Assembly (NCBI RefSeq): GCF_032062105.1 | Contig: NW_026919181.1 | Coordinates: forward strand, 1 to 64,000 | Source: Saccostrea cucullata | Lineage: Eukaryota | Length of the DNA: 64,000 bases | Direction: 5' to 3' | Shown here: positions 12,871 through 61,502 of the stretch, piece after piece | Numbering within the stretch: position 1 is the first letter of the stretch | How the letters are laid out: each line of letters starts with the position of its first letter | The notes under the pieces: generated by a model | Seen by the model: the letters and a program-made list of their open reading frames with translations, nothing else | The model's database searches: none | What the model was told of the DNA's origin: nothing | Program-made: the position numbers and the translations under genes

Positions 12871-13010
12871 TAAAAACAACACATTGTGCTAAAATGCTTG
12901 AATGTATGATGAGAGGAGATCCCAGTAAGTTTCCTTGGGAAAATAACGAAGCAATATAATGCACAGTCTGTCTTTGTGTATATGCTATTCATAGCTTATT
13001 TAAACTTGAT

Positions 13011-13318
13011 GATAAATCTAGGTCTCTTCCGAGGGGACGAATATACGATCCGAGGATAAATCTAGATGTCTTCCGAGGAGACGAATATACGATCCGAGGA
13101 TATATCTAGATGTCTTCCGAGGAGACGAATATACGATCCGAGAATAAATCTAGATGTCTTCCGAGGAGACAAATATACGATACCAGGATAAATCTAGATC
13201 TTTTCCGAGGAGACGAATACACGATCCAAGGTTAAATCTAGATCTCTTCCGAGGAGACGCATATATGATTCGAGGATAAATCCAGATGTCTTCCGAGCGA
13301 CGAATACACAATCCGACG
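13011..13318 (+). repeat. 44-bp minisatellite, ~7 copies
   Basis: Unit gataaatctagatgtcttccgaggagacgaatatacgatccgag. Confidence 0.95.
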
Positions 13319-13441
13319 TAAACTTAAGAGGACTCCATTTAATGATTTAGAACTTTAAATACCATGCTTAACGAAATTATATATTAAAAGAGATAATGGT
13401 TCCAAATGTTTATTTTAATTGAAAGAAAACGAAACATTATG

Positions 13442-15386
13442 TTACAGAACACTCTTCTGGCTCCAAACAAAAGAGAAATCCTCACAAATAAAGGGAAGTT
13501 TCAGTCCGTCTTCTCCCGTATAGTACGTGTAGTTTCTCTCCGTCACCCAACGCCACCTACCGTCGTTATGATAAGTCAAAAGGAGACCAAAGATTGGGTC
13601 AACTGCTGTCTCGCCTTCGTCGTTAGGATTCCAGTTCTGATACGTCACAGATGTCTCGCCCCTATCGTTAGGATTCCAGTTCTGATACGTCAATGGTATC
13701 CAATCATCAAAAATGAGTCCCTCATTGTCGTCAAATGTCAAATGCAAATGAACCGTTGACATCAACTTCTACAGCAAAGGACAAGAAAAATTTATATTAT
13801 ACTCAAAAAACTTTATTTTATTTTTATGAATAAGGATTAGTAGTATCTTTTCTAGAATGTTTTTTAACACCGCCTATACGACATGACTTGATGCTTTAAA
13901 TCCTGTTGCTCTAAAAATTGATAAAATTTGATCTGTTGTATCCAAATTCAAAAGACATTGAAAGGGAGCGTATCCTTTTTTGCGTGGTAGCATATGTAAC
14001 AATAGAAAATTTTCTAACGAGCATAAGCTAACCTAGGCAAAACTACAATTCAATTTAAAGAACAAAGGTAAATAAGTGCCTTTGGTGGATGGTGTTCCTG
14101 TCCAAAAATACTGTTGTTTGAATGAAATTAATAATTAACAATTTTGATACACTGCGAAAATATGCTTTCCAGATTAAATGTGAAGTTTGTTTTCTTTATT
14201 TCAAAAATTTAAAATCAGATTTGTAGAACGCTAAAAAATATCTCACTATTTATCAAAGGTGTTTCAATATAATCTATATTATTTTTTGATGAAAGAGTAT
14301 CTATTTTTATTCAAAGGCAAGTTAGAGAAATTCGAAAAAAAAAACGATTGTATTCATTTCATTTAAATAAAAGCATTTTATGAATAAATTGTTTTATTAC
14401 CCAGGCTTACGCCTTGAAACCTCCCAAGGAACAACAGCATGTAATAAAAAGAAAATTAATGACTGGATTGTATACAGGCGTCTCATTATATCGCGGTACT
14501 TAAATCTTTTGCATAAAAAGTGTATTTTGATTTTTTTAAATTAACTTTCATAAAATGATATTAGTAATGCAAACTATGGCCTAACTTTTTAGTATCAAAT
14601 TATTTCCCAAGCTTGCATCGTCTAAGTTGAAGTCTATTTTTAACTCCTAAACTGGAGAGTCTCAAAGTATCGCGGTTATGGGAAAACGTGGAAACTTGAG
14701 GTTGACATGGACTTCAATTCTTATTTTTTTTTATTTTACCATGTAATTTTACGTAAGAAAATAAACAATTATACAAACTAAAGATTTTAAAACATTAACT
14801 TTATATGAATTTTACTATAAACTCGGTGGGCTAAAAATAATAAAAACGGAGATCGATTTTTGTAAAATTATGTTTAATTTGAATAATTTTTTTTTCATAC
14901 ACATTTTCCATACTTTTTAATCATCACAAAAATTTACATTGAGATGACAGACTGATATTTTTTCATCAAAAAGCATATGAGCTATGTATCTGATTTTTTG
15001 AAATATACCGCGATACAATGAAACCCGCGGTATAATGAGAATCGAGTACATATGGTAAAATTACTTGATAAGTAGATTGTTTACATACCCGGATGAAAAC
15101 AGTTAACTATAAAATGTATTAGCTAGATGAACTATATTGTTCAATTACCCGGATGTATGCGGTTTACGCCTAAAAATCTTCCATATCCATCACCATACCA
15201 GACCAGAAGCTCTTCGACCGGCTCTACGTCACGTTACGTCATATAGAAGATGATGCCCTTGCACTTGATAGAGATGACATTTTCCTGTTGATATTTGGTG
15301 GGAGAATTAACGAATCGTAACCAGTTACTACAGGCCGGATCTTCTGCATCTATGTTGTAAGTACCATCGGTCCCCAGTTTATCTAC
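13442..15386 (-). pseudogene. PR/SET (PRDM-type) domain exon (15386-15149) spliced to a C-type-lectin-like terminal exon (13768-13442); disabled; upstream exons not found
   Basis: Exon A translates VDKLGTDGTYNIDAEDPACSNWLRFVNSPTKYQQENVISIKCKGIIFYMT*RDVEPVEELLVWYGDGYGRFLGVNRIHP and has an AG acceptor and a phase-1 GT donor. Exon B contains IFDDWIPLTYQNWNPND...WRWV...LPFICE. Lesions: TAA at 15236-15234 and a 7-bp tandem duplication (atttgac x2) near the start of exon B. Confidence 0.82.
14475..15046. mobile_element. TA-flanked MITE (Tc1/mariner-pogo type) in the intron of the PR/SET-lectin pseudogene
   Basis: TA|CAGGCGTCTCATTATATCGCGG ... CCGCGGTATAATGAGAATCGAG|TA. Confidence 0.65.
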
Positions 15387-15544
15387 CTTTGAACACAATA
15401 AGATCCTAATTGTTAAGAATTAATTTTAGTTCGGAATATTTAATATATTTAATACTTTAACAGAACCAGATCAATATTGATCAAAACTACTTTAAGGTAA
15501 TGAATTTTTAGGATTTAAAAGAATCTAAAAAATAAAGCATTGTG

Positions 15545-15930
15545 AGAGTGTTGCATTAGCAATACAAGTCCCCTACCGGCAAGTGTAATCTTGTCCTTTC
15601 TAAAATTGAAAATTTTATCATACATTTTTAAAGTGGAAAGAAAAAAAAATCTATCTATAACTTAATAACTCATTAAGGTCAAGCAACTTTCACTAGAAAT
15701 AACTCAATATCTCCAAGTGTTTAGAAAAATGAAGGGATCATTGAAGCGTTACAAAATGAAAACTTGATTTGAAACTTACATACATAAAATCAGATCAAAA
15801 TCTTCAAGGGTTTACATGTAGGAGGGAAAAATGCAGAAAACAAAGTTGAACAGAATGAGTGACAGCTAGACGGACGGATAAACAGGCAGACAGGCGGGGG
15901 ACGAAAGGATAGGGAAAGCTAGACGGGCGG
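15545..15930 (+). mobile_element. HINE-like (Helentron-associated) fragment
   Basis: Head gagtgttgc...agcaatacaagtcccctaccgg, one decayed central repeat, then a GACG/GACA-type microsatellite (15860-15930). Confidence 0.55.
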
Positions 15931-17051
15931 ACACTTCATCTTACTGATCAGGGGAACAATGATGTTAATTAAACGCCACTAGGTAAACAACAATTCATCT
16001 TACTGATCAGGGGAACAATGATGTTTATAAAACGCCATTAAGTAAACAACACTTTATCTTACTGATCAGGGGAACAATGATGTTAATTAAACGCCACTAG
16101 GTAAACAACACTCCATCTTACTGATCAGGGAAACAATGATGTTTATAAAACGCCACTAAGTAAAGAACACTTTATTTTACTGATCAGGGGAAAAATGATG
16201 TTAATAGACCACCACTAGATAAACAACACTTCGTCTTATTGATCAGGAGGAAAATTATGTTAATGAAAGGCCACTAGGCAAACAACACTTCATCTTACTG
16301 ATCAGCTTGCAGGGGAACAATGATGTTAATAAAACGCCACTAGGCAAAAAACACTTCATCTTACTGATCAGGAGAACAATGATGTTTATTAAAAACCACT
16401 AGGTAAACAACACTTCATCTTACTGATCAGGGGAACAATGATGTTAATTAAACGCCACTAGGTAAACAACAATTCATCTAACTTGTCAGGGGAACAATGA
16501 TGTTTATAAAACGCCACTAAGTAAACAACACTTTATTTTACTGATCAGGGGAACAATAATGTTAATTAAACACCATTAGGTAAACAACACTCCATCTTAC
16601 TGATCAGGGGAACAATGATGTTAATTAAACGCCACTAGGTAAACAACTCTTCATCTTACTGATCAGGGGAACAATGAGTTTAATTAAACGTCACTAGGTA
16701 AACAACACTTCATCTTACTGATCAGGGGAACAATGATGTTAACAAACTGCCACTAGGTAAACAACATTTCATCTAACTGATCAGGGGAACAATGATATTT
16801 ATAAAACGCCACTAGGTAAACAACACCTCATCTTATTGATCAGGAGAACAATGATGTTAATTCAACTACACTAGGTAAACAACACTTCATCATACTGATC
16901 AGAGGAACAATGATGTTAATTAAACGCCACTTGGTAAACAATACCTCATCTTACTAATCAGAGAAACAATGATGTTAATAAAAAGCCATTAGGTAAACAA
17001 CACCTCATCTTCCTGATCAGGGGAACAATGATGTTAATAAACCGCCACTAG
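15931..17051 (+). repeat. 59-bp satellite, left block (~19 copies)
   Basis: Unit acacttcatcttactgatcaggggaacaatgatgttaattaaacgccactaggtaaaca. Confidence 0.97.
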
Positions 17052-19449: not shown

Positions 19450-19990
19450 AGGGTGTATAACAAACATTGGGCCAACGTTGGGCCAACACACTACTACCAG
19501 TTTGATAAGACACTTTATTAAGGATGTATTACAAACATTTGGCCAACGTTAGGCCAACATACTACTATCAACTTGATAAGACACATTCTTTATGGGTGTA
19601 TAACAAACATCGGGCCAACGTTGGGCCAATATACTACTACCAACTTTAAAAGACACTTTCTTTAAGTGTGTATTACAGATATCGGGCCAACGTTGGGCCA
19701 ACATACTACTACCAACTTTAAAAGACACTTTCTTTAAGGGTGTATTACAAACATTGGGCCAACGTTGGGTCAACATACTACTACCAACATTAAAAGACAC
19801 TTTCTTTAAGGGTGTATCACAAACATCGGGCCAACGTTGGGCCAACATACTACTACCAACATTAAAAGACACTTTCTTTAAGGGTGTATCACAAACATCG
19901 GGCCAACGTTGGGCCAACATACTACTATCAACTTTAAAAGACACTTTCTTTTAAGAGTGTATTACAAACAGTTGGCCAACATTGGGCCAA
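19450..19990 (+). repeat. 72-bp subterminal tandem repeat (~7 copies) of the CMC element; ~108-bp repeats at 17180-17530 at the other end
   Basis: gggccaacgttgggccaacatactactaccaac...aaagacactttctttaagggtgtat recurs with 72-bp period. Confidence 0.92.
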
Positions 19991-20192: not shown

Positions 20193-21687
20193 AGGTAAAC
20201 AACACTTCATCTTACTGATCAGGGGAAGAATGATGTTAATTAAACGCCACTAGGTAAACAACATTTCATTTAACTGATCAGGGGAACTATGATGTTTATA
20301 AAACGCCACTAAGTACACAACACTTTATTTTACTGATAAGGGGAACAATAATGTTAATTGAACGCCACTAGGTAAACAACTCTTCATCTTAGTGATCAGG
20401 GGAACAATGATGTTAATAAAACGCCACTAGGCAAACAACACTTCATGTTACTGATCAGGGGAACAATGATGTTTATAAAACGCCACTAAGTAAACAACAC
20501 TTCATCTTACTGATCAGGGGAACAATGACGTTAATTAAACACCACTAGGTAAAAAACACTTTATCTTATTGATCAGGGGAAGAATAATGTTAATTAAACG
20601 TCACTAGGTAAACAACTTTTCATGTTACTGATCAGGGGAACAATGATGTTAATAAAACGCCACTAGGCAAACAACACTTCATGTTACTGATCAGGGGAAC
20701 AATGATGTTAATTAAACGTCACTAGGTAAACAACACTTCATCTTACTGATCAGGGGAACAATGATGTTAATAAAACGTCACTAGGTAAACAACTTTTCAT
20801 CTTACTGATCAGGGGAACAATGATGTTAATAATACGCCACTAGGTAAAAAACACTTTATCTTATTGATCAGGGGAAGAATAATGTTAATTAAACACCACT
20901 AGGTAAACAACACTTAATCTTACTGATCAGGGAAACAATGATGTTTATAAAACGCCACTAAGTAAACAATACTTTATCTACTGATCAGGAGAAAAATAAT
21001 GTTAATAAACCACCACTAGATAAACAACACTTCGTCTTATTGATCAGGGGAACAATGATGTTAATAAAACGCCACTAGGTAAACAACACTTCATGTTACT
21101 GATCAGGGGAACAATGATGTTAATAAAACGTCACTAGGTAAACAACTTTTCATCTAACTGATCAGGGGAACAATGATGTTAATAAAACGTCACTAGGTAA
21201 ACAACTTTTCATGTTACTGATCAGGGGAACAATGATGTAAATAAAACGCCTCTAAGTAAACAACTCTTCATCTTACTGATCAGGGGAACAATGATGTTTA
21301 TAAAACGCCTCTAAGTAAACAACTCTTCATCTTACTGATCAGGGGAACAATGATGTTAATTAAACGCAACTAGGTAAACAACACTTTTTCTTACTGATCA
21401 GGAAAACCATGATGTTAATAAAACGCCATTAGGTAAACAACACCTCATCTTACTGATCAGATCCTCAATGATGTTAATAAAACGCCACTAGGTAAACATC
21501 ACTTCATCTTACTGATCATAGGAACAATGATGTTAAAAAAACGCCATTTTGTAAACAACACCTCATTTTACTTATCAGGGGAACAATGATTTTAATTAAA
21601 AGCCATTAGGTAAACAACACCTCATCTTACTGATCAGGGGAACAATGATGTTAATTAAACGCCACTAGGTAAACAACACTTCATCTT
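20193..21687 (+). repeat. 59-bp satellite, right block (~25 copies)
   Basis: Same unit as 15931-17051, resuming in register after the transposon. Confidence 0.97.
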
Positions 21688-22590
21688 AAAAAAACAAATT
21701 TACTCTTTGATATTTCCTTAAACATTTGAAACGGCTATGAAAAATTCTAAGAGTCGATTTTATTTTTAAATATTATTTAATTGTTTTATTTTTTTTCAAT
21801 TTCTAACAGATGGATATTCAAACTGGTTTTACCACAAATTTACAAAGACAACCCATTAGTCAGATGAAACATCTCTGATAAAATAACCAATTTTTAAAAT
21901 TCATCATGGGAATCTTTTCCTTGTTTTTTTTAATAATGTTTATTGCCCCAAGTGTATCCCTTTACCCTTTTTATATAGCTCATGTGATATTGATTTTGTA
22001 TCCCACAGATGTGAGTCATAATGGGTTTACCAAAGGAAGGAAATTAAAGTGGAGTCCTATATATACAAGCCTGTGTAAACCATGGATTGTGAAGTATTAA
22101 ACATGGGATGAAAAGAATTTCCCATGGTTTTTTTTGTTCGATTTGGTCGGGGATAAAAATCACACAATTTGTTGGATAAAAATAATATCCAACTACAAAT
22201 CATGGGAGATCCTACATAGATCAAACAGAAAAAAAAATTGTGAAGGATTATGTTTTGAGAAGTTTGGGGTTGAACTCCTGAAGGATTAAAAGTTTCATTA
22301 ATTCTCTTTACTGAATGCTCCCAAATAAAAGCTGTACATTATCTGTGTTGTAATAAATTGAAAATCAGACATGTTTTGTTCTTTTTTACGAGCTCTGCAG
22401 AATGATGATGTCTGGGCTGAGAATTAGAATAAATATGGTTTTTTTTAATACATCTTACAGTGGCAACTTTTCTTTCCGTGGATTTCAACATTGAATTAAA
22501 TTCTAATTTTATAGCATTTATACCTTTTAATGCACCTCCCCTGATACAGACCCTTTGGACTAAATGCATGAGACAGCGCCTAGGAAGAAT

Positions 22591-24983: not shown

Positions 24984-27367
24984 ATGACGATGTTTTTAGT
25001 TCTTGTACTGATTTTCATGTCTGTATCAAAAATCAGGACGGCTTCCTTGTTAACCGGTACTAACGATCAGAACTCCACTGCTCTGATAAACGAAAGAAAT
25101 GGCGTAAAGGAGATCGATATCCTCCGTCAGCTCGTCAATCAAGAGACACGAATACGGGTATCCGTTGTCAACGACGTCATGGCAGCTCTGGATGACGTCA
25201 ATTCTGTGAAGAAAAACATAGAAATGTTACAAAGAAAGGTTGATTCTCTGACTGAGGAGCAGAAAAGAGTAAACAGTAATTGCCAGGAAAAGATTCAGGA
25301 ACTTGAAAAGAGGTTTACTAAAAAAATCGCCGAAATTTACGAAGGTGCATTCTCTTTCTGTTCCTCTCTTCTTATTGTTCCACGTTTTCTTCTTTTTTAA
25401 ATCATAATGTTTATGACGTCTTTTGTCATACAGATGTCAAACTCAATAAGGATTGTAAGGACCACTTTATAAAGGGACAAACACAGTCTGGTGTCTATGA
25501 AATTCATCCGTTTGAAAACCAGACCCAAGTCAGCGTGTATTGTGACATGGAAACCGAGGGCGGTGGGTGGACAGTAAGATTTCTTTCGATATCTTTCTTT
25601 TTATTACCTTTGTCTATTTTAATTTTATTTAAAATTCCATTTGTACATGTAACATGCGGGCTAATCAGTAGATAAAATACATATATATTAAGAAATAAAC
25701 AATACCGTAAATGAAGCATTTATTTCTTTTTTCAACCCAAAGGCAATTCAGAGACGTGTGGGCGGATCTGTGAGATTTAACAGAACGTGGGCGGAGTACA
25801 AGACTGGGTTCGGGAGTCCTAACCACTCCTACTGGATTGGAAAGTACTTGTGTTAATCTCTCACTCTACAATAGCATGATGAATTCAGGGTATGTACCAT
25901 GAATATATGATTTTTCAAATACAGTTTGATAACACTATCACTACGAGTGTAGTAAAAATAACACAAATCTGATGTTATTTTTTTTTTAAATCGTAGAGTT
26001 AAAAATAACATTGGTTTAAGGTATGGGGAAACTACAAATTTTAATTAAAGTCTGACATTCTTGAAATCCTAATTTATTCTCATTCTAGACGTATGTTATA
26101 CTCCAAAAATTTAAGGGGATGAAGGATGTATGGTCACGTGACTCAGTTGATTTACGTCATAATCTCTGATAAAATATGTACAAAACGAGATTGAAACCAC
26201 AGTACTTGTATAATTTTTTTGACTGTTTGTTTGCGTTCACCATCTAGTATAAAAATATCTGAAAACATTTAAAATTTCTTGCAAATATTATCAAATTACG
26301 GAATAGATTAATCCGCTCTTCTGTTTCTTCTACACTGCGCGTCCAGCGTATCGTTGACGTCATAGTGGATCTCTTAGTTCAGTAAGATCATACACGGTAA
26401 AAACGGGTAGTATAAAATCATAAAAACGGGCCATTATATGTACATGGTAGGGTATTTTGTAAATTTCAGAACGCAAAAAATATTTTTACATGGTTGTTGA
26501 CGGAAAAGTTCTGTTGTTTTGTCTTATATTTCGCTTATATCAGGAATGTGTGACGTCATAGTTGGGTTTTCCCGTACTCGAGAAATGTAAACATGACACG
26601 TTTTTCTCATGATCATGACTCGTTTAACTTTGCCCCGTGCAATATTGAGCTCAGCTTCACCAATCAATATTTTTACAGTTAATCAATACAATGACGACCT
26701 TGAACTTCGACGTAAATTTTCAAATATTGAATGATAGGATTTTTTGCAAATTAATTTTTTCATGGTTTAAGTTGTCCTAAAAAAGTCGTAAATTTCCGTC
26801 TCCAGATGTAGTGTTACAAAAGAATCTTGCTTTTTCGAATTTTTAACCCTATTCATACTCTAAAATATTTTAAAAGACACATTTCCGCAGGTATATTTTT
26901 TATCTATGGTGAAAAATTTCAATTATCGACCGAGTAATGGACCCAGAAACACGGAGAATAAAAACTCCACTCAGACACTGTGGGGTATGGTATTTGTCAC
27001 TCAATATCTCAGAAATAAGTCTAGAAACCTATTGATATGTCTGCTTTATTGTATGTAGGACATACTAAATAAGATATATACAAAATATGAAAAAAATTAA
27101 ATGACAGGTATTTTTTCAGCTAAAGGTCCTTCATCCCCTTAATTCATTTCTAACAATACACATTACGTACATGTATTGTAGGAAACGACGTTATTCAGCA
27201 GTTGACAAAGGGAAGAAACTCATCTCTATACGTCTCCATCACATTAAGAAATGGCACAACTCTGTATGAACTCTATCAACAGTTTGCTATTAGTGATGAA
27301 TCAGGCAAATACAAACTTTTCCTTGGCGGGCCAGCTACCGGGACATTAGGTTAGTAATTGATAAATG

Positions 27368-27415
<48 letters not shown>

Positions 27416-28657
27416 GCGTTTAAAAGAAAAGTTGGGGTTTTTTGTATTTAAAGTTCATGCAACATTTTACATAGTTAATAAAAATAATGATTTGTTAAAG
27501 GACTTTTTCGGTAATAACCAATATGTACCCCCCAAATCAAAATTTAATGGAGATATATTTAGTTCTTAGACATGGGAGTATATGTTGACTTCAAAGCACT
27601 GGATATTTTTATAAGTAATAACGCCATATGTACGTAATGTCGTCACAAACATTATGTAAAATTCAGTTTTTATGAATTTTACAGAAAAATGTACATATTT
27701 CGTCGATATTTTGAGTAAAAACATCGAGTGCATGTGTGTTCAGGATCGATATTTTGATATAATGTGTAGAATGATAATATCAATGAAATATTTCAATATT
27801 CTTCCTGAACATACTTGCGATCTATAAATTTGAATACTAAAAATGTTGAAATAATGTCCATTTTGTCCTCTTTCTGAAAAAGGATATAAAATCGGACTAG
27901 TTTGTGACGTTATAAAAACAGAAATTTTGAATAGACTATAATATTTTCTGTTAATTTATATTTCTCATACAATTTATTTAATTCAGAACATTTCAGGAAG
28001 TTTTCAAAATTTGACTTTTGTGGGGGCAAATATATATAATATACCGCATTTAGTTCTTTTGGTTTCATTCTTTTTTAAATTAATTATCGGCAATTTATCT
28101 ATATTTTTTTTAAAAATAACGATCTAATTTTCTTATCATTTTTTTTCGAGATTCCTTTTTATTTATTTATTAAAAGTCCAATGTGGTGTAGTTATACCAA
28201 ATAGACATCAAAGCATAGATAAAAGATATGTAGATATATCGTGCAGCAAAAAATAGGGATATAACATATCAGACAAGATATTTTTGCATTGGTCGTTCGT
28301 ATTCCTTTATAGTCAATTTTTAAAAAAATCATAACGAAAAGAAGAGAGAGATGACATTAGGTTGATTGATATAATCCAGGTGTTACCTTTACTTCTACAG
28401 GAGACGCTATGTTAGACACTGGGAAGTCTACGAGAGATCTGTCTGGAATGTTCTTCTCCACTCCAGACAGGGATAATGACGGAGCTATGGGTCCGAACTG
28501 TGCCGCAGCTAATGAAGGAGGCTGGTGGTTTAACTACTGCCACCTCGCCTACCTTAACGGTCCCTGGCCCCCGGCAATGTGGGCCGCTCCATGGAAACCT
28601 ATAGTAGAGGACGGATCCTCAGTAAGGGAGACCATGATGTTAATTAAACTTCACTAG
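24984..28657 (+). CDS. Secreted coiled-coil + fibrinogen C-terminal domain protein (FReD; angiopoietin/ficolin-like), ~340 aa; exons 24984-25344, 25434-25573, 25743-25839, 27182-27349, 28401-28657; intron-3 donor is GA (possible null allele)
   Basis: Signal peptide and heptad-rich exon 1. FBG motifs [48 protein letters not shown] and GGWWFNYCH. Exon 3 and 4 lengths (97, 168) are identical to gene 1. Donor at 25840 reads gaaagt. Confidence 0.85.
26115..27138. mobile_element. Kolobok-type non-autonomous element, 1024 bp, in intron 3 of FReD gene 2
   Basis: TTAA|GGGGATGAAGGA ... TCCTTCATCCCC|TTAA. Confidence 0.85.
27372..27410. repeat. (GA)n microsatellite
   Basis: Direct reading. Confidence 0.98.
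27499..28057 (-). mobile_element. Kolobok-type MITE (~560 bp), inverted homologue of 55675-56244
   Basis: Homologous along its length to the reverse complement of 55675-56244; TTAA on the left flank; end taccgcatttagttct. Confidence 0.8.
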
Positions 28658-31339: not shown

Positions 31340-31834
31340 AGGATATGGAAATAACGAACAGTATTCAATCTCAACGTCCATTGAACAAATATACAAAATA
31401 AGAGCAGAGCAAACACGGACCTCCGAAACATCAGAGGTGGGATCAGGTGCCATGGAGGAGTGAGCATCCCCTGCGGACCGGTCACACCCGCCGTGTGCTC
31501 GTTGTCATAATCAGGAAATAACGGAAAAAAATCCGTGGTCAATTCAGTGTATAAATAATGGACTAACAAGTGGTATGAAAAACGTCAGTCAGCATTTCAT
31601 TCAATGATAAATTGTATTTGCTGACAAGGTCATTGTATCGACCATAGAATTTACGAAATGATGACTTTAAACGAGACTGTTGATATTCTTGTTTCATCAA
31701 CTTGCTTGTCAATAATTTACCTCGTTTAAGAAATTGTTCATACGTAGAGCATGCTCTTGCGTATCGAAACAACTGAGATATAAATACTCCGTATGCAGGT
31801 GATGAAGGTATATTGCTGCATAAGTAAGGGAAGT
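31340..31834 (-). mobile_element. Penelope-like (Naiad-type) 3' fragment, young copy
   Basis: ORF 31563..31844 FPYLCSNIPSSPAYGVFISQLFRYARACS...; near-identical to 47395-47889. Confidence 0.93.
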
Positions 31835-32279
31835 AATGATTCACCTCTGATATCTGCTATTTTTGGTAGAACTATGTTTTTCTAAATCACATTTTTCTTG
31901 GAAATAATGCAGTTTGAAAGGCACATATTTAAAATGCTTTCGTCACAAAAATAACTTAACACAAATACTAAAGAACATTTGTATCGATTCACTAAAGGGA
32001 TCAATATCACTATAAAATATGTAAAAATAAATAATTATAAGAGTTAAAATAAAAAAGGTCTTTTTTTTTATTTCTTCATTAAGACATTTGTGAATTTAGA
32101 TATATATATATTTACATTTCCAATGTCTTTGTCCGAGATAAAATTAACAATTGTAAATGTAATTGATTTCCTCATGAATGTTTTGGCGCGGTTACAAAAA
32201 ACCACGTGCAGGGTGGTACAACACCTAGAGAGAAGCAGGCTTGGAGACCGTGGATTGGCGGAATCAAAGCATGTAAATA

Positions 32280-35050: not shown

Positions 35051-37430
35051 TCATTCCTCTAACAAAACTACAAAGTCTGTCACCGGTCTGATGTATGTAA
35101 GAGTCTTTCCGTCCTTGCTGACACGAACTTCCACCGTGCGAATTAACTTGTCCTTACCGGGAAACACCTTGATCACAAGCCCCAGGGGCCACATGTTTCT
35201 ATGAGTTTCTACGTCCTTAAGCAGTACGACATCACCCACACTAACGTTTCTTTGATCTTGATGTCACTTCTTCCGAATCTGTAAGGTGTGCAGATATTCT
35301 TTTTTCCATCTGTCCCAAAACATCTTGGAAAGGTGTTGAACTCTTTTCCACTGCACTCTTAGTAGATCCTTAGCATCTGTGTTGCAAACTTCATCATTCA
35401 TAGTGTCTGTCTTTTGAGTAAGCAAGATGTTGGGAGTGAGAATGAAAGGCGAGTCTGAATCTATAGGAATGTAGGTCAGAGGGCGCGAATTTATAATTGC
35501 ACTCGTTTCGGCAAGAAAGGTAGATAAAACTTCATGGGTGAGTCCGTGAGTGCCATGTTCCTTTAGCATATTGTCTAGGATACGGCGTGTTACCCCAATC
35601 ATTCGCTCCCATACGCCACCCATGTGTGACGCATGGGGGGGGGATTAAAGATCCAGACAGATCCTCCTGAGTACAGCAAGTCTTTGATTGGTGGATCCTC
35701 TATGTTGATAGCATTTATACGTAGTGGATCAACAGCACCAATAAAGTTGGTTCCCCTGTCCGAACGATACTCCTTCACACATCCTCGTATGGCGGTGAAT
35801 CTACGCAAGGCATTGATAAAGGATGAGGAAGACATCTCCTCCAGGACCTCAATGTGTACGGCACATGTCACCATACAAGTAAATAATGCTGCCCATCTTT
35901 TGCTGTTTGCGGAACCTCCTCTGGTTCGACGAGTCAACACTTCCCATGGCCCGAAGATATCTACACCGACTGACGTAAACGGTGGCTGTCCTGGTTCAAT
36001 GCGATCTTCTGGTAGGTCAGACATTTTCTGGGTGCTGCACTGCCTACGTTGTTTTCTGCAAGTTACACACTTGTGAATAAGTGAAGAAACGAGACGCTTG
36101 CAGCCTGTTATCCAGTATCCCATTGATCTAACTTTCCCTTCTGTAAAATGTCGACCTTGATGCATAACTAGTTGATGGCATTTGCGAATCAACAAGGTTG
36201 CTAAGTAGTGCTTCCCTGACAGTAGTATGGGATTTTTGCAGATAGCATCTGTTTTCAGGTGCTTCAAACGTCCACCTACTCGGATGATTCCTTCATCATC
36301 GATGAATGGGTCTAAGGTAAGTATGCTGCTGTTCTTCGGTAATGGTTGACTTGAGCGCAAGCAGTCAATTTCTTCAGGGTAGACTTCCTGTTGCACTGTC
36401 TTGATCAAGAAGTGCTCAGCCCGTTGATAGTAGCTCAGTGATTTTGGCAAAATCAGTGATTTGTCTTCCTTCCTGTACACTATAAAGCGTTTTAATAATG
36501 CTAGACTCTCCACCAAACGATCCCAGTCAGAAAATCGCTCAAATCTTGAAGTGCCCAACAATGGTCTGCACTCTGTCTTTAGACAAGTGGGTCGGATTTC
36601 CTTGTCTACTTGAGGTTCAACTAGTGGAAAGGTTATGGTTTGGTCATTCTGATCACTCAAATGAACATCTACTGGTCCATTTAACCAAGTACTTGTAGCT
36701 ACGTCTCCTTGTGACACTCCTCTGGTGCCTTCATCAGCAGGGTTGAGATGAGTCGGGATATAGTGCCATTGATCTGGGTTGCTGAAACTCCGTATTCTTT
36801 CCACTCTGTTAGATACATAGATAAAGAATCGTCGCTTGTCATTGTTTATATAGCCAAGTACAACACGACTATCACTAAAGTACTTCACTGAATCAAACAC
36901 TACATCAAAATGTTCTGTGACAGTTTGTGAAATTTCCACGGCAAGCACGGCTGCACAAAGTTCCAAGCGTGGAATGGTGTGACCAGACACTGGTGCAACC
37001 TTCGACTTCCCGAGCACAAATCCAGTTTTAGAGGAACCATCTGGGTAGAGTACATTCACATAAGAAACAGCAGCTACTGCTTTCTCTGATGCATCACAAA
37101 ACGTCCAAAGTTCCTTTCTCACAGCCTTACTGAGGTATGGTACAGTCACACGGGGAATACATAGATCTTCTAGAGCCTTGAGTGATGAGCTCCGCTCTAT
37201 CCATCGTGACATGAGGTAGTCTGGTAGCAGTTCATCCCAATCTACAGTTTCTGTGACTTCTTCTCGCAGGATAAGTTTACCATTGATAGTCACATGAGAG
37301 AGGAATCCTAACGGATCAAAGATGCTGTTCACTATTGAAAGTACGCCTCTACGTGACAGTGGTTTATCTTCTGTTGTAATGCTGAATTTGAACGAATCTG
37401 TAGTCAAGTTCCACTGAATGCCAAGACTGG
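35051..37430 (-). pseudogene. pol: BEL/Pao pol remnant: Pao RNase H-like region (peptidase A17 family), integrase Zn finger and core, C-terminal domain; frameshifted
   Basis: LGIQW...DPLGF, FCDASEKA, KSKVAP, TIPRLELCAA, NPADEGTRG, GVDIFGP, SDRGTNF, GGVWERMI, WPLGLV. Frame breaks at the G-run 35634-35643 and near 35264. Confidence 0.92.
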
Positions 37431-39712
37431 TCACAAGGTTCAAGAATAGTTCTGCGACCATTCTCAATAATAAAGGTCTTGTACACTGTGGCGACTTTCG
37501 GAATGTGTTTTCCAGATAAACATGTATCACCGATAATCGTCCAGCCTAATGGTGACCTTTGAGCGAAAGTTTCCTCTTCCTGTCCTATTCGTTGTTCTAT
37601 CACATGGTGAGCTTGAGGAAGATCTCTTCCTATCAGTAACATGATTTTCTTTGAAGTGTCGACTGGTGAAAAGGAACTCGCAATATCTCGCATATGTGAA
37701 TAATGAACTGCCACTTCTGGGGTGGGAATCTCTAGATAGTTGTTTGGTATTTCATCACATTCTAGGACACATGGAAGTTGAAGTCTTGTGTGACGGTCTG
37801 CTGACTCAATGAACAATCCTGATGCTGTTCTGCCTGATATCATCACCTGTCCAGAACAAGATGTCATCAGATACTGTATTGTCTGTGAATTTATGCCCAA
37901 CAAGTCAAACAGTTCTTTCTTTGCTAAAGTCTTGTTACTTTGATCATCTAACATAGCATATAAGGAAACAGCTTTTCTATAATAGGTCACTGTTGCAGGA
38001 ACTATCCTGGCACAGGATTTTCCTTTGAATTCCCCACTAATTTCTGTACAGCTACTGTTCACTGTTGTCACATGTTCACTGGGAATAAGGGGTTGTTTAG
38101 GGGGTTCCTCCCCGCCATGGACTGGTGCACGTTTCTGTTTCTCAACACTGCCACTGGAAGCTGAAGCGCTGTCCACATGCAATGCTGTGATGTGAGATTC
38201 ACTTCCGCAGTCTTTGCACTTAATGTTTGCCTTGCAGTCAACTTTTCTGTGAGTTCCAGAACAACAACGAAAACACAGTCCATGCTCTCGCATTAGTCTC
38301 CTGCGTTCTTCCAGAGATTTTGACTTGAACACTCTACAGTTAGCAACACTGTGTTTCACCCCAGGTCCCTTATGAATCACACATCCATCATCCTTATGAT
38401 CTTGGGAATTAGCTGTTTCATTCTGTTGGGTCACAGTTGTCTTTTTGGTGCTCACTTTTCCCTTGAATGCGGTCAATGGTTGTGGGTTACTGTCACTGTG
38501 ATACTTAAAACTGGGATCATTTCTGATTCTGCTCATCTCCTTGATAAAGTCAACAAATATGTTAAAGGGAGGAAAAATGGCTCCATGTGTATTTTTATAT
38601 TTTACCGCACGGTTGGTCCACTTTTCCTGTATGGAATACGGCAATTTGGTAATTATTGTCCTTATTCCCACTGAAGAGTCCAGATAAGATAACATGCATG
38701 AATATTTGGGATCCTCCTTTAGAAACTGTAACTCCCTGAGGATGTCAGATAACTCGTAAAGTTTCTCGTCGTCCTTGTTTCCTAGTTTCGGAAAGTTGGA
38801 GAGTTTGGCCCTAATGGAAGCTTCTACAAGTTCTGGAGCCCCATAGCGTTCGTCAAGGCGATCCCAGAGCCTTTGTAATCCCTTAGACAAATCAAAGATA
38901 TTTGATGTCTTGATGCTTAATGCATGTTTTCTTGATTCTGGTCCTAGATATTTGATCAGGAGATCCATTTGTTCGGACGCCATAATTTGTAATTCGTTCA
39001 CAACAGAAAGGAAACTTGATTTCCATGCACAGTATGATTCTGGTTTGTCATTAAAGCTAGAAAGTCTAGAAAAGAGTAAGTCCTTCCTAAGTAGAAATCG
39101 AGTTACGCCAGCCACTTGAGGTGAGGTCTGTTGATGTGGAATATATGGTTGTGCATACGGGTTCATATGTATGACAGGAGAAGCCTGTATATCAACATGA
39201 CTCGTTGTTCCTTGGGTCAGTGGAGGTTTGGTTTCCTTGACCACAGCTGATATTGGTGACATACATCCCATAGTAGATTCCAGCATCTGACATTCCGCCT
39301 CTGCCTCTTCTGCCTCTCTCTGCAGGTTCAGCACCTCGAGCTCTACTTCTATCTCTGCTTGCTTCTTTCGTAGTTCTAATTCCTTTATCGCATACTGAAT
39401 TTTCGCCTTGGCTGCCTTTGCCTCTGCTCTTTTCCTTGCGAGATCTTCAGTGAAGAGAGTAAAATTACCACTTGACTGAGAAGGAATACTGTCAGTACTT
39501 CCATTGCCATCATGGTCCTTTACTTCTGACAACTGGGAATGAACACTGTGAATACTTCCATTGCCCTTAAGGTCCACTTTGTTCTTTACAGGGTCTGCCT
39601 GTGTAATGTTGTGGTCATCCTTGTTGGACAATGAGGCATTGGTCTCTGGTAGTGTTCCATCACCATGTTCCAAGGTTGATTCAGTTCCTGTTTTCTCCCC
39701 CTGTGTGCTCAT
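37364..39712 (-). CDS. gag: BEL/Pao gag-protease ORF (782 aa), ends at the RT deletion
   Basis: Coiled coil, BEL gag core (LWDRLDERYGAPE), Cys/His knuckles (CVIH...HSVANC; CFRCC..H...C; CKDC...HITALH), aspartic-protease-like YAMLDDQSNKTL. Confidence 0.92.
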   Translation of the reverse strand: MSTQGEKTGTESTLEHGDGTLPETNASLSNKDDHNITQADPVKNKVDLKGNGSIHSVHSQLSEVKDHDGNGSTDSIPSQSSGNFTLFTEDLARKRAEAKAAKAKIQYAIKELELRKKQAEIEVELEVLNLQREAEEAEAECQMLESTMGCMSPISAVVKETKPPLTQGTTSHVDIQASPVIHMNPYAQPYIPHQQTSPQVAGVTRFLLRKDLLFSRLSSFNDKPESYCAWKSSFLSVVNELQIMASEQMDLLIKYLGPESRKHALSIKTSNIFDLSKGLQRLWDRLDERYGAPELVEASIRAKLSNFPKLGNKDDEKLYELSDILRELQFLKEDPKYSCMLSYLDSSVGIRTIITKLPYSIQEKWTNRAVKYKNTHGAIFPPFNIFVDFIKEMSRIRNDPSFKYHSDSNPQPLTAFKGKVSTKKTTVTQQNETANSQDHKDDGCVIHKGPGVKHSVANCRVFKSKSLEERRRLMREHGLCFRCCSGTHRKVDCKANIKCKDCGSESHITALHVDSASASSGSVEKQKRAPVHGGEEPPKQPLIPSEHVTTVNSSCTEISGEFKGKSCARIVPATVTYYRKAVSLYAMLDDQSNKTLAKKELFDLLGINSQTIQYLMTSCSGQVMISGRTASGLFIESADRHTRLQLPCVLECDEIPNNYLEIPTPEVAVHYSHMRDIASSFSPVDTSKKIMLLIGRDLPQAHHVIEQRIGQEEETFAQRSPLGWTIIGDTCLSGKHIPKVATVYKTFIIENGRRTILEPCDQSWHSVELDYRFVQIQHYNRR

Positions 39713-47096: not shown

Positions 47097-47889
47097 GTTA
47101 TTTTTATATTCATATGAAGCAGAATTTATGCAAAATCTTATGCATGAAAAGAAGAGAACACTTGCTGTGGCCTTCAACTCGACATTTAGATATATCGACG
47201 ACGTATTGTCAATTAATAATGATAATTTCCATTCCTACGTCGACACGATATATCCTGGTGAGCTTGAGATAAAAGATACCACAGAGTCCGACACTTCTAC
47301 TTCATACTTGGATATTTTACTTGAAAAAGTCACTAATGGTAATCTAACTACCAAGCTATATGATAAACGTGATGACTTTAACTTTTCTATCGTCAACTTC
47401 CCTTACTTATGCAGCAATATACCTTCATCACCTGCATACGGAGTATTTATATCTCAGTTGATTCGATACACAAGAGCATGCTCTACGTATGAACAATTTC
47501 TTAAACGAGGTAAATTATTGACAAGCAAGTTGATGAAACAAGAATATCAACAGTCTCGTTTAAAGTCATCATTTCGTAAATTCTATGGTCGATACAATGA
47601 CCTTGTCAGCAAATACAATTTATCATTGAATGAAATGCTGACTGACGTTTTTCATACCAATTGTTAGTCCATTATTTATACACTGAATTGACCACGGATT
47701 TTTTCCGTTATTTTCTGATTATGACAACGAGCACACGGCAGGTGTGACCGGTCGGCAGGGGATGCTCACTCCTCCATGGCACCTGATCCCACCTCTGATG
47801 TTTCGGAGGTCTGTGTTTGCTCTGCTCTTATTTTGTATATTTGTTGAATGGACGTTGAGATTGAATACTGTTCGTTATTTCCATATCCA
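47097..47889 (+). mobile_element. Penelope-like (Naiad-type) retroelement, 5'-truncated, best-preserved copy; ORF 47128..47667
   Basis: FRYIDDVLSINN, IYPGELEIKDT, SYLDILL, LYDKRDDFNF, SNIPSSPAYGVFISQLIRY. The ORF stops after the RT thumb with no C-terminal GIY-YIG, as in N-terminal-endonuclease PLEs. Confidence 0.93.
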
Positions 47890-49744: not shown

Positions 49745-50480
49745 AGGATATGGAGGTGATGAACAGTATTCAATCTCAAAGTCCATTTTACAATACAAAA
49801 TAACAGCAGAGCAAACACGGACAACTGAAACGTCACTTGTGGGATCAGGTGCCATGGAGGAGTAAGCATCTCCTGCTGACCGGTCACACCCGCCGTGTGT
49901 TCCTTGTCATGATCAGAAAATAACGGAAAAATCCGTCGTAAATTCAGTGTATAAATAATGGACTTACAATTAGTATGGAAAACGTCAGTCAGCATTTTAC
50001 TCAATTATAAATTGTATTGGCTGACAAGGTCATTGTTTCGACCATAGAAATTACGAAATGATGACTTTAAACGGGACTGGTGATATTGTTTCATCAACTT
50101 GCTTGTCAACAATTTACCTAGTTTTAGAATTTGTTTATACGTAGAGCAAGCTCTTGCGTATCGAATCAACTGAGATATATATACTCCGTATGCAGGTGAT
50201 GAAGGTATATTGCTGTATAAGTGAGGGAAGCTGACGATAGAAAAGTTAAAGTCATCACGTTTATCATATAACTTGGATGTAAGGATACCATTAATGTCTT
50301 TTTGAAGTAAAATATCCAAGTATGAAACAGATATGTTAGACTCTTTGGTATCTTTTATCTCAAGCTCTCCTGGATATATCGTATCGACGTAGGAATGGAA
50401 ATTACCTTTGTTTATTAACAATACGTCGGCGATATATCTGAAAGTCGAGTTGAAGGCCAAAGCAAGTGTTTTTATTTCTT
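49745..50480 (-). mobile_element. Penelope-like (Naiad-type) fragment, diverged subfamily
   Basis: ORF 50005..50460 (FRYIADVL...IYPGELEIKD...LYDKRDDFNF...SQLIRYARAC) plus 3' motif. Confidence 0.92.
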
Positions 50481-56662: not shown

Positions 56663-57577
56663 TCGTACAAATGCCTACACAAACCCACAAACAAAACAAT
56701 TTGCTATAATTGTAACAAACAAGGTCATTTAGCCAAAGACTGTGAAAATGAACCTGTATGTAGATATTGTAAAGAAGAGGGTCATAGCAAGGACAACTGC
56801 GAGTTACTTTCAGAAAAAATGGTACAAAAGTATGGTAAATATGCCGCAAATATCAATGAAGGCAGAGAGGCTTTAAACGACGATGACCAACGAAGCGAAA
56901 CTGACAGTACGGAAGCGGACACGCATGACGATCAGCAGATCAATACCGTTATTCTGGGGGCGTCGAACTGCAAGCGCATTAAGAAGCTTCCGCCAAATAT
57001 CTTAAACGCCTCGGTCTCTGGGTCATCCTACGAAAACGTGACACAATTACTGGAATACGCTAAGAAAAAATTGGACGAAACTACTCCGGAAAATATAATC
57101 GTTCATTTAGGAACAAATGATGTTACCAGATGTCAAGACGAAATTGGTGATTTAACGGGCAATGTTATGACGGGTCTTAGCAAGATTCAAGAAACTTTTC
57201 CCGAAGCTCGAATTGCAGTATGCACAGTCATACCCAGGAAAGGAAAAAGCGCCGCGATTAAAAAAATGAACGACAACACTTGGCATGTGAACAAATTCCT
57301 TGAAAAATTGTGTGAAAAAAATAAATTATTATCAGTGATCGACGTATGCAGCTCATTCATAAATGACCAAGGGCTTGCTACTAGAGCACTGTATGACAGC
57401 AATGACCCCAGCGGTGTGCATGTCAGTAGCGAAGGTGCCGAGAAAATTGCTGATATTTTCTGCAATTACAATTGCTCCGCGAACGGTCCTCCTCGAACCC
57501 CTAGCATTACAAAACGGAAGCTAAGTTCAAATACCCCAGCTTCCACCGAAAAACAGGGCAAAATACAAAAAATGTAA
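56663..57577 (+). CDS. LINE ORF1 C-terminal part: two CCHC zinc knuckles + SGNH/GDSL esterase domain
   Basis: In frame upstream of the track ORF: CYNCNKQGHLAKDC and CRYCKEEGHSKDNC. Then ILGASN (block I), VSGS (II), VHLGTND (III) and DPSGVH (V). Confidence 0.88.
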   Translation, partial: SYKCLHKPTNKTICYNCNKQGHLAKDCENEPVCRYCKEEGHSKDNCELLSEKMVQKYGKYAANINEGREALNDDDQRSETDSTEADTHDDQQINTVILGASNCKRIKKLPPNILNASVSGSSYENVTQLLEYAKKKLDETTPENIIVHLGTNDVTRCQDEIGDLTGNVMTGLSKIQETFPEARIAVCTVIPRKGKSAAIKKMNDNTWHVNKFLEKLCEKNKLLSVIDVCSSFINDQGLATRALYDSNDPSGVHVSSEGAEKIADIFCNYNCSANGPPRTPSITKRKLSSNTPASTEKQGKIQKM

Positions 57578-57722
57578 ACTCTAAGTAACAGAGCTGATCA
57601 ATATGACTTTTGTTAGATAGATTGGTCACTATATGTACATAATTACTACTTGTATATATATTGTACATATTTTTTTTTCATTCGTATTTTGTGGTATATT
57701 TTAGATTGCTCTATCACTTAAA

Positions 57723-60700: not shown

Positions 60701-61502
60701 TAAATTAGTAGACAAAAGATGTTGGATATTTGAATATAGTAAAATAAAATCAGCCATTCCTAAACTGTTTTATCCAATACTGAAAAGAAACAGCTCAGTA
60801 TCAAATAGCGAAACAAAACTCCCTTATAAATTGAATAATAATTTACTTATAAAAAGAGATACTAATAAAGTGGAAACCTTTGAAGATATCAAGTTAAAGA
60901 ACATAGAAAAAATATTAAACAAGACAATAATTCCAAAATGTCAAGAAAAATGGGAAAATATTTACCAAAATAACATACAGTGGAACTTAGTTTGGGACAG
61001 TATTTCAAAAATGAAAGTTAAAAATAAAATTCAAGAATTCCAATGGAAATGCGTGCATAATATATTGTATACTGAAGATAAATTATGTAAAATCGGACTA
61101 TCCAATGGTTTATGCAACCTATGTAAAAATCATAAAGAAAATCAACAACACCTCCTTTTCCATTGCACAAAAGTTAAAACAACACTTAAATTACTAGAAG
61201 ATATAATTGAAAATGTGCTGCAACTAAATGGAACTTTACAAATTAACCAACAAACAATAACATTAGGCTACTTGAAGGAACCGCAAACCCAAAGAAATGT
61301 TGTTAACATTTTAATATGTATTTATAAATGGGTCATATGGAAAACAAGAAATAAAATTAAATATGAGAATTTAAAAATAACTGACTTCAGCATTAAAAAC
61401 GCATTCAAAAATGAAATGAAATCGAATTTTTCACTTTTACAATCACATGATTTGACAAATTTCAAAGAGAAAATTAATCATGTATTTCAAAATTCCTTGT
61501 GA
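57723..61502 (+). CDS. LINE ORF2: APE endonuclease + reverse transcriptase + C-terminal zinc finger, intact 1259 aa
   Basis: SINVNGL, LQETH, GDFN, SRIDY, SDH; KSPGEDG, WRPLTMLNNDYKI, DQQKAFD, RQGCP, FADD; CNLC...HLLFHC. Confidence 0.97.
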   Translation: MTLHIASINVNGLRDKKKRMCIFSWLSKRKYDIICLQETHGTDKETQKWENEWKTFKGSNSIWNNWSSESRGVGVLFMIKKPEFKITKTISDREGRDITVSIKNNDFTVDIKCIYTPNNGVDRKQYFNSLKFDELAHHKIICGDFNCTQNKQLDRHPVPLRKDIAVSELKDLIKRCELQDIWRERNPDKRCYTFHRGNSKSRIDYFLTSENILHKINNCAIVHFPFSDHDLITLKLQLDNIQRGPGLWTMNHKTLTNDDFRKTFVEFWENYKKSLVNCQDILYWWDLTKYKIKTLCIEMSKKLNVNKQKLEKLEKELEEIKNNPMTNKKYQNDLEQKIKEIYIDKTEAAIIRSKCRWFKEGEAPSKYFFQLEKSNGEKKLWNRIKTENGTYKSDIDSIIEEQINFYYKLLNTEGWDSESGEQLLAEVQCKLDDCDVNMLDSDISDQEIYLAVMSLKPNKSPGEDGILSTFYQIYWDIIKNEFSKVIKHIFHRATLCDSQTKGVISLIHKGNEREEIKDWRPLTMLNNDYKIIAKILAERLKKVLPKLIHPDQKGFVKGRNISDANRLIQDIIDYADNEDLEGAIIFLDQQKAFDRIEWGWVEATLKRFNFGKKYCDWIKMLLIKSKTSIKTNGFVSKYFPISRSARQGCPIAPLLYVLQIEPMACAIRQNPQIKGILIPNKDKKIECKINMFADDTQLFNKDEESIIHSFNVLEIYEKASGAKINFSKTKGLFIGKSRGKTPKFKKIQWIKTNIKTLGVNHGYGIDTNAIWLEKIEKIKNSLHVWKTRNLTFKGKTLIIKNLIIPIIGYEIEMRGIPDIYAKQINDIVWSFIWDNKLNKIDRNVCCLSKNEGGMNMINLFNFIKSKQIKTIYKIMHSKLETWNAIGKYWLQSKDMHSSQEYFLCTCSDLSPISLNNMSSFYKKALIAYSEFQSKFVPENREEILNLSLFGNKLIQFQGKSLYVESFIKSGLLKIKDIWNDAENCFKYNDTIFNKLVDKRCWIFEYSKIKSAIPKLFYPILKRNSSVSNSETKLPYKLNNNLLIKRDTNKVETFEDIKLKNIEKILNKTIIPKCQEKWENIYQNNIQWNLVWDSISKMKVKNKIQEFQWKCVHNILYTEDKLCKIGLSNGLCNLCKNHKENQQHLLFHCTKVKTTLKLLEDIIENVLQLNGTLQINQQTITLGYLKEPQTQRNVVNILICIYKWVIWKTRNKIKYENLKITDFSIKNAFKNEMKSNFSLLQSHDLTNFKEKINHVFQNSL

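Follow-up and report, generated by a model that had tools for sequence, protein, structure and literature searches.

A disabled, 5'-truncated copy from an amplified oyster gene family predicted to carry a PR/SET domain nested in a C-type lectin-like domain

In the stretch of Saccostrea cucullata DNA studied here (contig NW_026919181.1, positions 1 to 64,000, referred to as the window), the minus strand carries an exon encoding half of a PR/SET domain and, about 1.4 kb downstream, a second exon for which an earlier note had proposed a lectin-like fold. In animals, SET and PR domains are seen as chromatin enzymes of the nucleus, and C-type lectin-like domains (CTLDs) as modules for recognition outside the cell. 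The locus raises the question of whether the two exons belong to one gene and what kind of protein such a gene would encode. With a probability of about 85%, we consider positions 13437-15386 (minus strand) to be a non-functional, 5'-truncated copy of exons 6 and 7 from an amplified, oyster-specific family in which a PR/SET domain is nested in a CTLD. Exons are numbered after the intact member P0032 (LOC134244832) on contig C17638, which has seven exons, and the parts of the relic are as follows:

15149-15386, minus strand: what is left of exon 6 of 7, encoding the C-terminal PR/SET half and equivalent to P0032 residues 211-290
15388-15387 and 15148-15147, minus strand: AG acceptor and GT donor of exon 6, the donor in phase 1
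13769-15148, minus strand: intron 6, phase 1, from GT at 15148-15147 to AG at 13770-13769
13437-13768, minus strand: what is left of exon 7, the last one, encoding the C-terminal half of the split CTLD, with a PFICE motif at its end
13414-13409, minus strand: AATAAA polyadenylation signal, kept in paralogues

The window exons were searched separately, and exon 6 was split into two pieces at its internal stop codon. The first piece matched the Pfam family PRDM2_PR (PF21549) over profile positions 57-98 with an E value of 6.5e-10 and 39.2 bits (cut-off 27), and the second over positions 100-122 with an E value of 8.5e-4, so that the assignment to PR/SET lies far beyond chance; only positions 57-122 are represented at the locus, which therefore holds no complete domain. 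In a tblastn search with P0032, exon 6 was 87.5% identical to the intact paralogue. The 238-bp PR/SET exon with a phase-1 donor that had been read from the letters of the window is thus borne out by its position, its splice sites and the PF21549 match. Exon 7 is opened by a polypyrimidine tract and a tAG acceptor (13771-13769) and starts at 13768, three positions upstream of the 13765 previously given. Its present frame stops at 13444-13442 and the ancestral stop is at 13439-13437; the AATAAA lies downstream of the latter, which makes exon 7, the exon B of the earlier note, the terminal exon. Intron 6 is 70-82% identical to the same intron at paralogous loci. The proposal that both exons belong to one gene holds: more than 40 loci in the genome pair them on the same strand and in the same order, the Ostrea edulis protein LOC125673957 is continuous across the predicted junction of exons 6 and 7 (..RIHP-E-NDPNGSFAF..), and full-length open reading frames (ORFs) with both parts are found on contigs of 1.3-1.7 kb.

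The lesions of the window copy were called from a MAFFT alignment with four paralogues, plus twelve copies of exon 6; the intron remnant and the satellite arrays, listed last, come from blastn comparisons and Tandem Repeats Finder:

15236-15234, minus strand: in-frame TAA stop within exon 6, a Ser codon in 12 of 12 compared paralogues
13739-13745, minus strand: site of a 14-bp deletion in exon 7, a frameshift relative to the four paralogues
13601-13690, minus strand: in-frame tandem duplication of 45 bp (2 x 15 codons), specific to the window copy, within the variable loop after Y-x-N-W
13468-13476, minus strand: 1-bp deletion, exact site ambiguous (near 13471), which alters the last ~12 residues
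15387-15930, minus strand: remnant of intron 5, in which homology to intact genes ends ~90 bp before the expected exon 5
15931-17051 and 20193-21688, no strand assigned: two arrays of a 59-bp satellite, separated by further repeats, where exons 1-5 would be expected

The TAA in exon 6 had been masked as a dot in the translation given earlier. With the 14-bp deletion, a portion of the strand that corresponds to "WIGL" in lectins was lost. The frameshift had been ascribed to a 7-bp tandem duplication; the 7-mer repeat is real (Tandem Repeats Finder reports a period-7 array at 13730-13750) and removal of 7 bp does open the frame, but the alignment with the four paralogues rules the duplication out, since the deletion leaves three adjacent 7-mers and so resembles one. 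Exons 1-5 had no match anywhere in the 64-kb window in tblastn searches with eleven family proteins, which found exons 6 and 7 only. The same junction of intron 5 and satellite is present in a 95.8%-identical copy on contig C23573, and the truncation is therefore older than that duplication; the two copies also have extra non-synonymous changes in common. With intron 6 kept, exons 1-5 missing, and a stop codon and two frameshifting deletions acquired, the locus is an unprocessed (duplicated) pseudogene. The verdict of a dead copy from a bivalve family is upheld by the stop, the frameshifts and the lost exons, the members so far being oysters (Ostreidae) only. No activity can be inferred for a copy that is disabled three times and lacks five exons and the promoter region.

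The order of events may be reconstructed as follows: the copy lost exons 1-5 at the junction with the 59-bp satellite, was then duplicated along with a neighbouring fibrinogen-related gene, and later gained the stop codon, the two frameshifts and the in-frame duplication. One might suppose instead that the two exons still yield a short product like the annotated LOC134251505 (P0008, 184 amino acids), as two-exon models (P0008 and P0003) are annotated and both the splice sites and the AATAAA are intact in the window. We give this almost no credence in view of the TAA in exon 6, the 14-bp and 1-bp frameshifts in exon 7, the excess of non-synonymous change in common with the truncated twin and the lack of a first exon or evident promoter, not to mention that half a SET domain and half a CTLD cannot fold as either domain.

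What the intact gene looks like was then read from its relatives. A HMMER search with an exon-7 profile returned 21 representative proteins among 1.84 billion at E≤1e-3, and no ordinary C-type lectin was among these matches; a word search with an intact exon 7 gave short oyster models only. Every long profile match (326-392 amino acids) has the PR/SET domain in full (PF21549 profile 2-122, E 1e-24 to 1e-28) immediately ahead of the exon-7 domain. Full-length relatives score 84-97 bits over this part of the profile, and an intact paralogous exon scores 76.5 bits. A word search started from one full-length member turned up 28 relatives in six oyster species, namely Crassostrea virginica, Magallana gigas, Crassostrea angulata, Saccostrea echinata, Saccostrea cucullata and Ostrea edulis, and the next match was a spider PRDM9, through the PR/SET part only. 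Cluster look-ups added no taxa beyond Ostreidae, to which all named members belong. The earlier note had suggested looking for paralogues with both parts in one ORF, and these six species indeed have full-length members. Intact members of Saccostrea, Crassostrea/Magallana and Ostrea are about 370-410 amino acids long; their database names are PRDM9, PRDM7-like, PRDM16-like, PRDM1 isoform X2, set-17-like or "uncharacterized", and their precomputed Pfam annotation lists SET and PR only (PF00856, PF21549). The genomic genes have seven exons over 4-10 kb, which in P0032 are:

Residues 1-18: exon 1, start of the hydrophobic N-terminus
Residues 17-94: exon 2, first lectin half
Residues about 95-147: exons 3 and 4, linker, ~30 residues of it helical
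Residues 144-215: exon 5, first PR/SET half
Residues 211-290: exon 6, second PR/SET half
Residues 291-390: exon 7, second lectin half

The fold was predicted with AlphaFold2 for P0032 from a 26-sequence alignment, with a mean predicted local distance difference test (pLDDT) of 80.7 and a predicted template modelling score (pTM) of 0.72, and for P0017, which is only 32% identical, with values of 78.3 and 0.70. The P0032 model has beta strands at 47-49 and 52-61, helices at 63-72 and 83-95, a long helix at 106-135, the SET region at 153-294, and further strands at 299-307, 339-346, 352-357 and 371-377. A Foldseek search of this model against the PDB listed SET domains only (PRDM9 4C1Q, E 3.9e-13), the lectin part being crowded out. 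Alignment of the models with VIA-align to 48,161 representative chains matched P0032 to PRDM9 (6NM4, 6nm4_A) with a Z score of 15.0 and 151 residues over model positions 122-276, and in addition to about 35 CTLDs with Z scores of 11-13.9, nearly whole targets being covered over the model range 39-381:

Bivalve lectin SPL-2 (6A7S, 6a7s_B): 134 of 138 residues aligned, root-mean-square deviation (rmsd) 3.1
Struthiocalcin: 128 of 131 aligned
NKp80: 122 of 123 aligned
SRCL: 126 of 129 aligned
Dectin-1: 125 of 127 aligned

The P0017 model gave Z scores of 19.2 for PRDM9 and 15.4 for SPL-2, the latter with 132 of 138 residues aligned (rmsd 2.6, model 30-370). Across both models the predicted CTLD fold was matched with Z scores of 11-15.4 by about 35 entries each, with 112-140 residues aligned to targets of 112-156. 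As 125-135 residues are aligned over a span of 343, an insert of ~200 residues must be skipped, and both end segments would therefore form one CTLD; contact between the halves is inferred from these aligned-residue counts and ranges. In the models, the PR/SET domain is thus a nested insert between alpha2 and beta2 of a CTLD, whose first half, of the long form with beta0-beta1 and alpha1-alpha2, would be encoded by exon 2 and whose second half, beta2-beta5 ending in PF[IV]CE, by exon 7. The earlier idea of a lectin domain interrupted by a SET insert agrees with models and exon phases in this respect, except that the first half is supplied by exon 2 and not by the upstream exon of the window (exon A). 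The lectin-like character claimed for exon B, which Pfam does not recognise, likewise agrees with its pairing with an N-terminal half-CTLD in the two AlphaFold models.

Sequence searches with the separate parts point in the same direction to different degrees. With phmmer, P0032 residues 155-285 matched PRDM9 (E 2e-23) and residues 42-103 matched two C-type lectins, echicetin A of a snake (E 1.7e-3) and one of a mosquito (E 9.6e-3), and the N-terminal half of two members matched profile positions 2-59 of 107 of Lectin_C (E 7e-4). The best match of the exon-7 profile to PDB sequences, a multi-CTLD receptor, has an E value of 0.085 and is suggestive only. A fold search in the ESM Atlas gave chordate PRDM clusters only; all of them matched via PR/SET, and both domains occurred together in none.

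Six cysteines, numbered on P0032, are conserved:

C42: kept in 17 of 17 sequences
C53: kept in 18 of 18
C70: kept in 18 of 18
C126, in the linker: kept in 23 of 24
C253, in the SET domain: kept in 26 of 26
C375: kept in 26 of 26

Cysteines stand at the CTLD positions C0, C0', C1 and C4 in all sequences, with C1 in one half and C4 in the other. C42 may pair with C53, as in the hairpin of long-form CTLDs, and C70 with C375, the CTLD C1-C4 pair, which would tie both halves together; C126 and C253 would join the helix of the linker to the SET domain, a pairing peculiar to this family. The position of the WND motif reads W-[RKHS]-W, and the invariant Y-x-N-W is followed by a loop that differs greatly from one subfamily to another, both in its length and in its sequence. 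Within PR/SET, the motifs GxG, NW.R..N, FY and ELLVWYG.Y are invariant or nearly so and align with PRDM9. Among 26 sequences, Y194 is nearly invariant and Y259, Y275, N238 and NW.R are invariant, all aligning with PRDM9 residues; the three tyrosines align with those that we take to be the catalytic ones of PRDM9.

The gene structure is compatible with an insertion. Exon 2 ends in phase 1 (..GAA A/gtaaga) and exon 7 starts in phase 1, so that exons 3-6 constitute a symmetric 1-1 cassette and the PR/SET insert could be added or removed with the frame kept. Were the cassette taken out, a lectin gene with a phase-1 intron at this site would remain. At four loci (C18968:16500-20500, C7595, C854 and C6032) an open exon 2 is followed after ~700 bp by an open exon 7, and no PR/SET exons lie between them. 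Their exon 2 is 85-88% identical to that of P0032, their exon 7 belongs to a different subfamily, and the phases are compatible (1-1). As the two exons resemble different subfamilies, these loci may have arisen by recombination and deletion and would then not be ancestral. The protein that they could encode would be lectin-like and uninterrupted, and they offer a natural insert-free comparison. Six other loci (C21451, C6152, C5342, C1352, C14908 and C22070) have exon 2 followed after ~270 bp by the 3' part of exon 7 (P0032 327-390), apparently a recurrent internal-deletion form of the gene. Another variant is P0001 (S. cucullata LOC134283677 isoform X2), in which a signal-like exon 1 is joined to exon 7, resulting in 114 amino acids made up of a hydrophobic leader and the second lectin half.

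These data also bear on the view that the split CTLD is a modelling artefact and the two end segments are small domains in their own right on either side of an ordinary PR/SET domain. Such a view could draw on the failure of Pfam to detect the C-terminal half, on the E value of 0.085 of the exon-7 profile and on the fact that the structures are all predicted. We consider it highly improbable, as two members with 32% identity give the same CTLD superpositions (Z up to 13.9 and 15.4) with 120-135 residues aligned and pTM values of 0.70-0.72, C1 and C4 are in all sequences with one per half, and four loci have exon 2 directly followed by an open exon 7 in compatible phases.

Whether the intact copies are real genes was judged from short run-assembly contigs and from selection. 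Uninterrupted full-length ORFs are present on run-assembly contigs of 1.3-1.7 kb from at least seven sequencing runs: P0035 (402 amino acids) on a contig of 1,724 bp from run SRR5469294, and P0010 (382 amino acids) on eight such contigs, of which the six that were read measure 1.30-1.42 kb and come from six different runs. These short contigs were taken as mRNA because they have no introns, and their ORFs suggest that both domains are carried by one transcript. Among intact paralogues, the mean non-synonymous distance (dN) of exon 6 is 0.020 and the synonymous distance (dS) 0.163 (ratio 0.125); the values for exon 7 are 0.014 and 0.072 (ratio 0.19), and the adjacent intron distance is 0.205. 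This shows purifying selection on the intact paralogues, possibly with gene conversion alongside.

When the genome to which the window belongs (1.17 Gb, 23,869 contigs) was searched in six frames, PF21549 had at least 104 matches, of which about 90 fell on the same half-domain exon, and exon 7 had at least 153. Dozens of loci have the PR exon and then exon 7 on the same strand, 0.6-3 kb apart, including C23573, C18968, C17638, C18262 (three times), C9612, C6304, C8768, C14090, C7284, C3716 and C19620, and a second copy of the exon pair is located on the window's own contig at 86-90 kb. Exons 2 and 5 were also found at many paired loci, and seven loci are 100% identical to P0032 residues 291-390. 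The window copy itself lies in a duplicated cassette, listed here with neighbouring features:

6205-15931, no strand assigned: duplicated cassette with a fibrinogen-related gene (plus) and exons 6-7 (minus), tail to tail
6894-10348, plus strand: convergent neighbour gene with a signal-like start, a PAN domain exon and Fibrinogen_C exons
13011-13316, no strand assigned: 44-bp tandem repeat, 7 copies with 87% matches, just downstream of the terminal exon and also at paralogous loci
24984-28654, plus strand: second fibrinogen-related gene, whose first exon (24984-25397) is signal-like with a coiled coil and which also has a Fibrinogen_C exon (28409-28654, E 5.6e-12)

In blastn comparisons the cassette is collinear with C23573 (95.8% over 8.2 kb) and 74-86% identical to C14090, C6304 and C1318:80-90 kb, and the split-lectin gene and the fibrinogen-related gene were duplicated together. 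The convergent gene matches PAN_1 (E 7.7e-5) and Fibrinogen_C (E 6.4e-11 and 3.9e-3); with two fibrinogen-related genes, the description of the neighbourhood as an immune-lectin cluster was a fair one.

Such numbers might also be expected if a mobile element or a satellite-associated repeat had picked up the exons and multiplied them, and the "family" were repeat debris stitched together by gene predictors. There are more than 100 copies, homology between them extends through introns and flanks, the 59-bp and 44-bp satellites abut exons, many copies are partial, and the gene model P0009 splices in an exon resembling a transposable element. However, dN/dS ratios of 0.13-0.19 with introns diverging faster led us to reject this as the main explanation. 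The full ORFs on short run-assembly contigs from several runs and the architecture conserved in six oyster species at 32-70% identity also speak against it, and the presence of an ordinary fibrinogen-related gene in the amplified unit is in keeping with segmental duplication. Mobile capture is therefore improbable, if slightly less so than an artefact of modelling, and an amplified gene family with a nested PR/SET domain is the preferred reading.

Several points nevertheless weigh against the nested architecture and the function that it may imply. The N-terminal half scores 20.8 and 20.6 bits, which is under the Lectin_C (PF00059) cut-off of 22.6, and Pfam recognises nothing relevant in exon 7 at E≤10, neither in the window copy nor in three intact subfamilies; because of both, the lectin assignment depends on predicted rather than solved structures. 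The C2-C3 cysteines of the second CTLD disulfide are absent from the family alignment, and the Ca2+/sugar motifs EPN or QPD and WND are absent from the family sequences. The mRNA status of the short contigs has missing introns as its sole ground. Finally, S-adenosylmethionine (SAM) is scarce outside cells, and an extracellular SAM-dependent enzyme would be biochemically odd.

Elsewhere in the window, several features were observed that are separate from the split-lectin gene. Between the satellite arrays lies a tandem repeat (~19549-19944) whose ORF gives a spurious, low-complexity Tox-PAAR-like Pfam match, no stretch of which passes on its own. On the minus strand at 35264-39712, ORFs of 782, 643 and 119 amino acids resemble retrotransposon gag and pol by eye, in a region with a GC content of 0.41-0.43 compared to about 0.31 around it. 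On the plus strand at 56819-61502, an ORF of 252 amino acids with a GDSL-lipase/OSK-like match (E 6.6e-11) is followed by one of 1,259 amino acids that by eye resembles the endonuclease and reverse transcriptase of a long interspersed nuclear element. A repeated ORF family with no Pfam match is found at 2761-3141 (plus), 31563-31844 (minus), 47128-47667 (plus) and 50005-50460 (minus), with the common stretch "..LIRYARACSTYEQFLKRGKLL..", which is also an exon of LOC134276439 (P0009), between its PR/SET and lectin parts; this LIRYARACSTYEQFLKRGKLL exon is probably an exonised repeat.

Compared with known systems, the PR/SET domain of PRDM9/PRDM7 (histone H3K4/K36 methyltransferase; PDB 6NM4, 4IJD, 4C1Q) is the best match of the oyster family in both sequence and fold, with an E value of 2e-23, about 35% identity and Z scores of 15-19. 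Unlike PRDM9, the oyster family lacks KRAB, SSXRD and C2H2 zinc fingers according to Pfam records, its PR/SET domain is, as predicted, nested in a lectin-like domain behind a signal-like N-terminus, and it has its own invariant C253 and conserved linker C126. With no zinc-finger Pfam family on record for any member, and with the PR/SET domain followed by a lectin-like half and a stop codon, the proteins do not have the make-up of PRDM transcription factors. With CTLDs such as SPL-2, which is a Ca2+-independent bivalve lectin, struthiocalcin, NKp80, SRCL and Dectin-1, the family shares the complete fold in the models, the N-terminal hairpin cysteines of the long form, the cysteines at C1 and C4 and the motifs "Y-x-N-W" and "PF[IV]CE". 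It differs from them by the ~200-residue insert that splits the domain and by the absence from its sequences of the C2-C3 disulfide and of WIGL, in addition to the sugar motifs. Like exon-shuffled extracellular mosaic proteins, it has a symmetric phase 1-1 module, and insert-free loci exist; unlike other shuffled mosaics, the module is a normally nuclear chromatin-enzyme domain and landed inside a domain instead of between domains. Bacterial SET effectors (Legionella RomA/LegAS4, Chlamydia NUE) are methyltransferases that leave the producer cell and act on the proteins of another organism. They are a precedent for a SET enzyme outside the nucleus of its own cell, but in contrast to the oyster proteins they are injected by secretion systems, are unrelated in sequence and have no lectin scaffold.

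As to function, 15 of the 19 full-length members have a hydrophobic stretch in their first ~46 residues (mean Kyte-Doolittle value of at least 1.5 over 12 residues), P0017 being just under the threshold with 1.49; a clear later transmembrane-like stretch was found in none of the 19, P0047 being borderline with 1.61. These N-termini fit a signal peptide or a signal anchor, and the intact proteins would accordingly be candidates for the secretory pathway, a proposal whose sole basis is the N-terminal hydrophobic segments and the cysteine patterns. There, the lectin-like scaffold may recognise a target through its variable long loop, and the PR/SET insert may either methylate lysines on that target or serve only as a binding module. 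Methylation is conceivable because the residues aligning with the active-site tyrosines of PRDM9 and the SAM-binding motifs are kept, and between this and a role as binding module or peptide-binding pocket the odds are roughly even. The picture of a massively amplified, secreted and catalytically competent PRDM9-type lysine methyltransferase on a lectin-like scaffold with a hypervariable loop, multiplied along with fibrinogen-related immune lectins, is rather unlikely. If it were true, the proteins that it marks or disables would lie outside the nucleus, on microbes, parasites or gametes for instance; the copy number and the neighbouring genes are the only hints of an immune role.

The architecture is a domain-in-domain chimera of two known folds, in sequences that are already public and labelled as PRDM paralogues. 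A non-exhaustive full-text search of the literature gave no description of a PR/SET domain nested in a lectin-like domain or of a secreted animal PR/SET protein, and papers on oyster "Prdm9" treat it as a meiotic gene. Naming the members PRDM9, PRDM7, PRDM1, PRDM16 or set-17-like can mislead work on oyster meiosis, recombination hotspots and epigenetics that counts "PRDM9" genes. The family is conserved across oyster genera and has more than 100 copies in one species, the window's own copy being only a dead relic. It would provide a clean case of an exon-shuffled domain-in-domain insertion, for which insert-free copies in the same genome allow comparison, and if the PR/SET domain is active outside the nucleus, it would raise the question of whether lysine methylation of proteins, in the lumen or outside the cell, plays a part in the defence or fertilisation of invertebrates.

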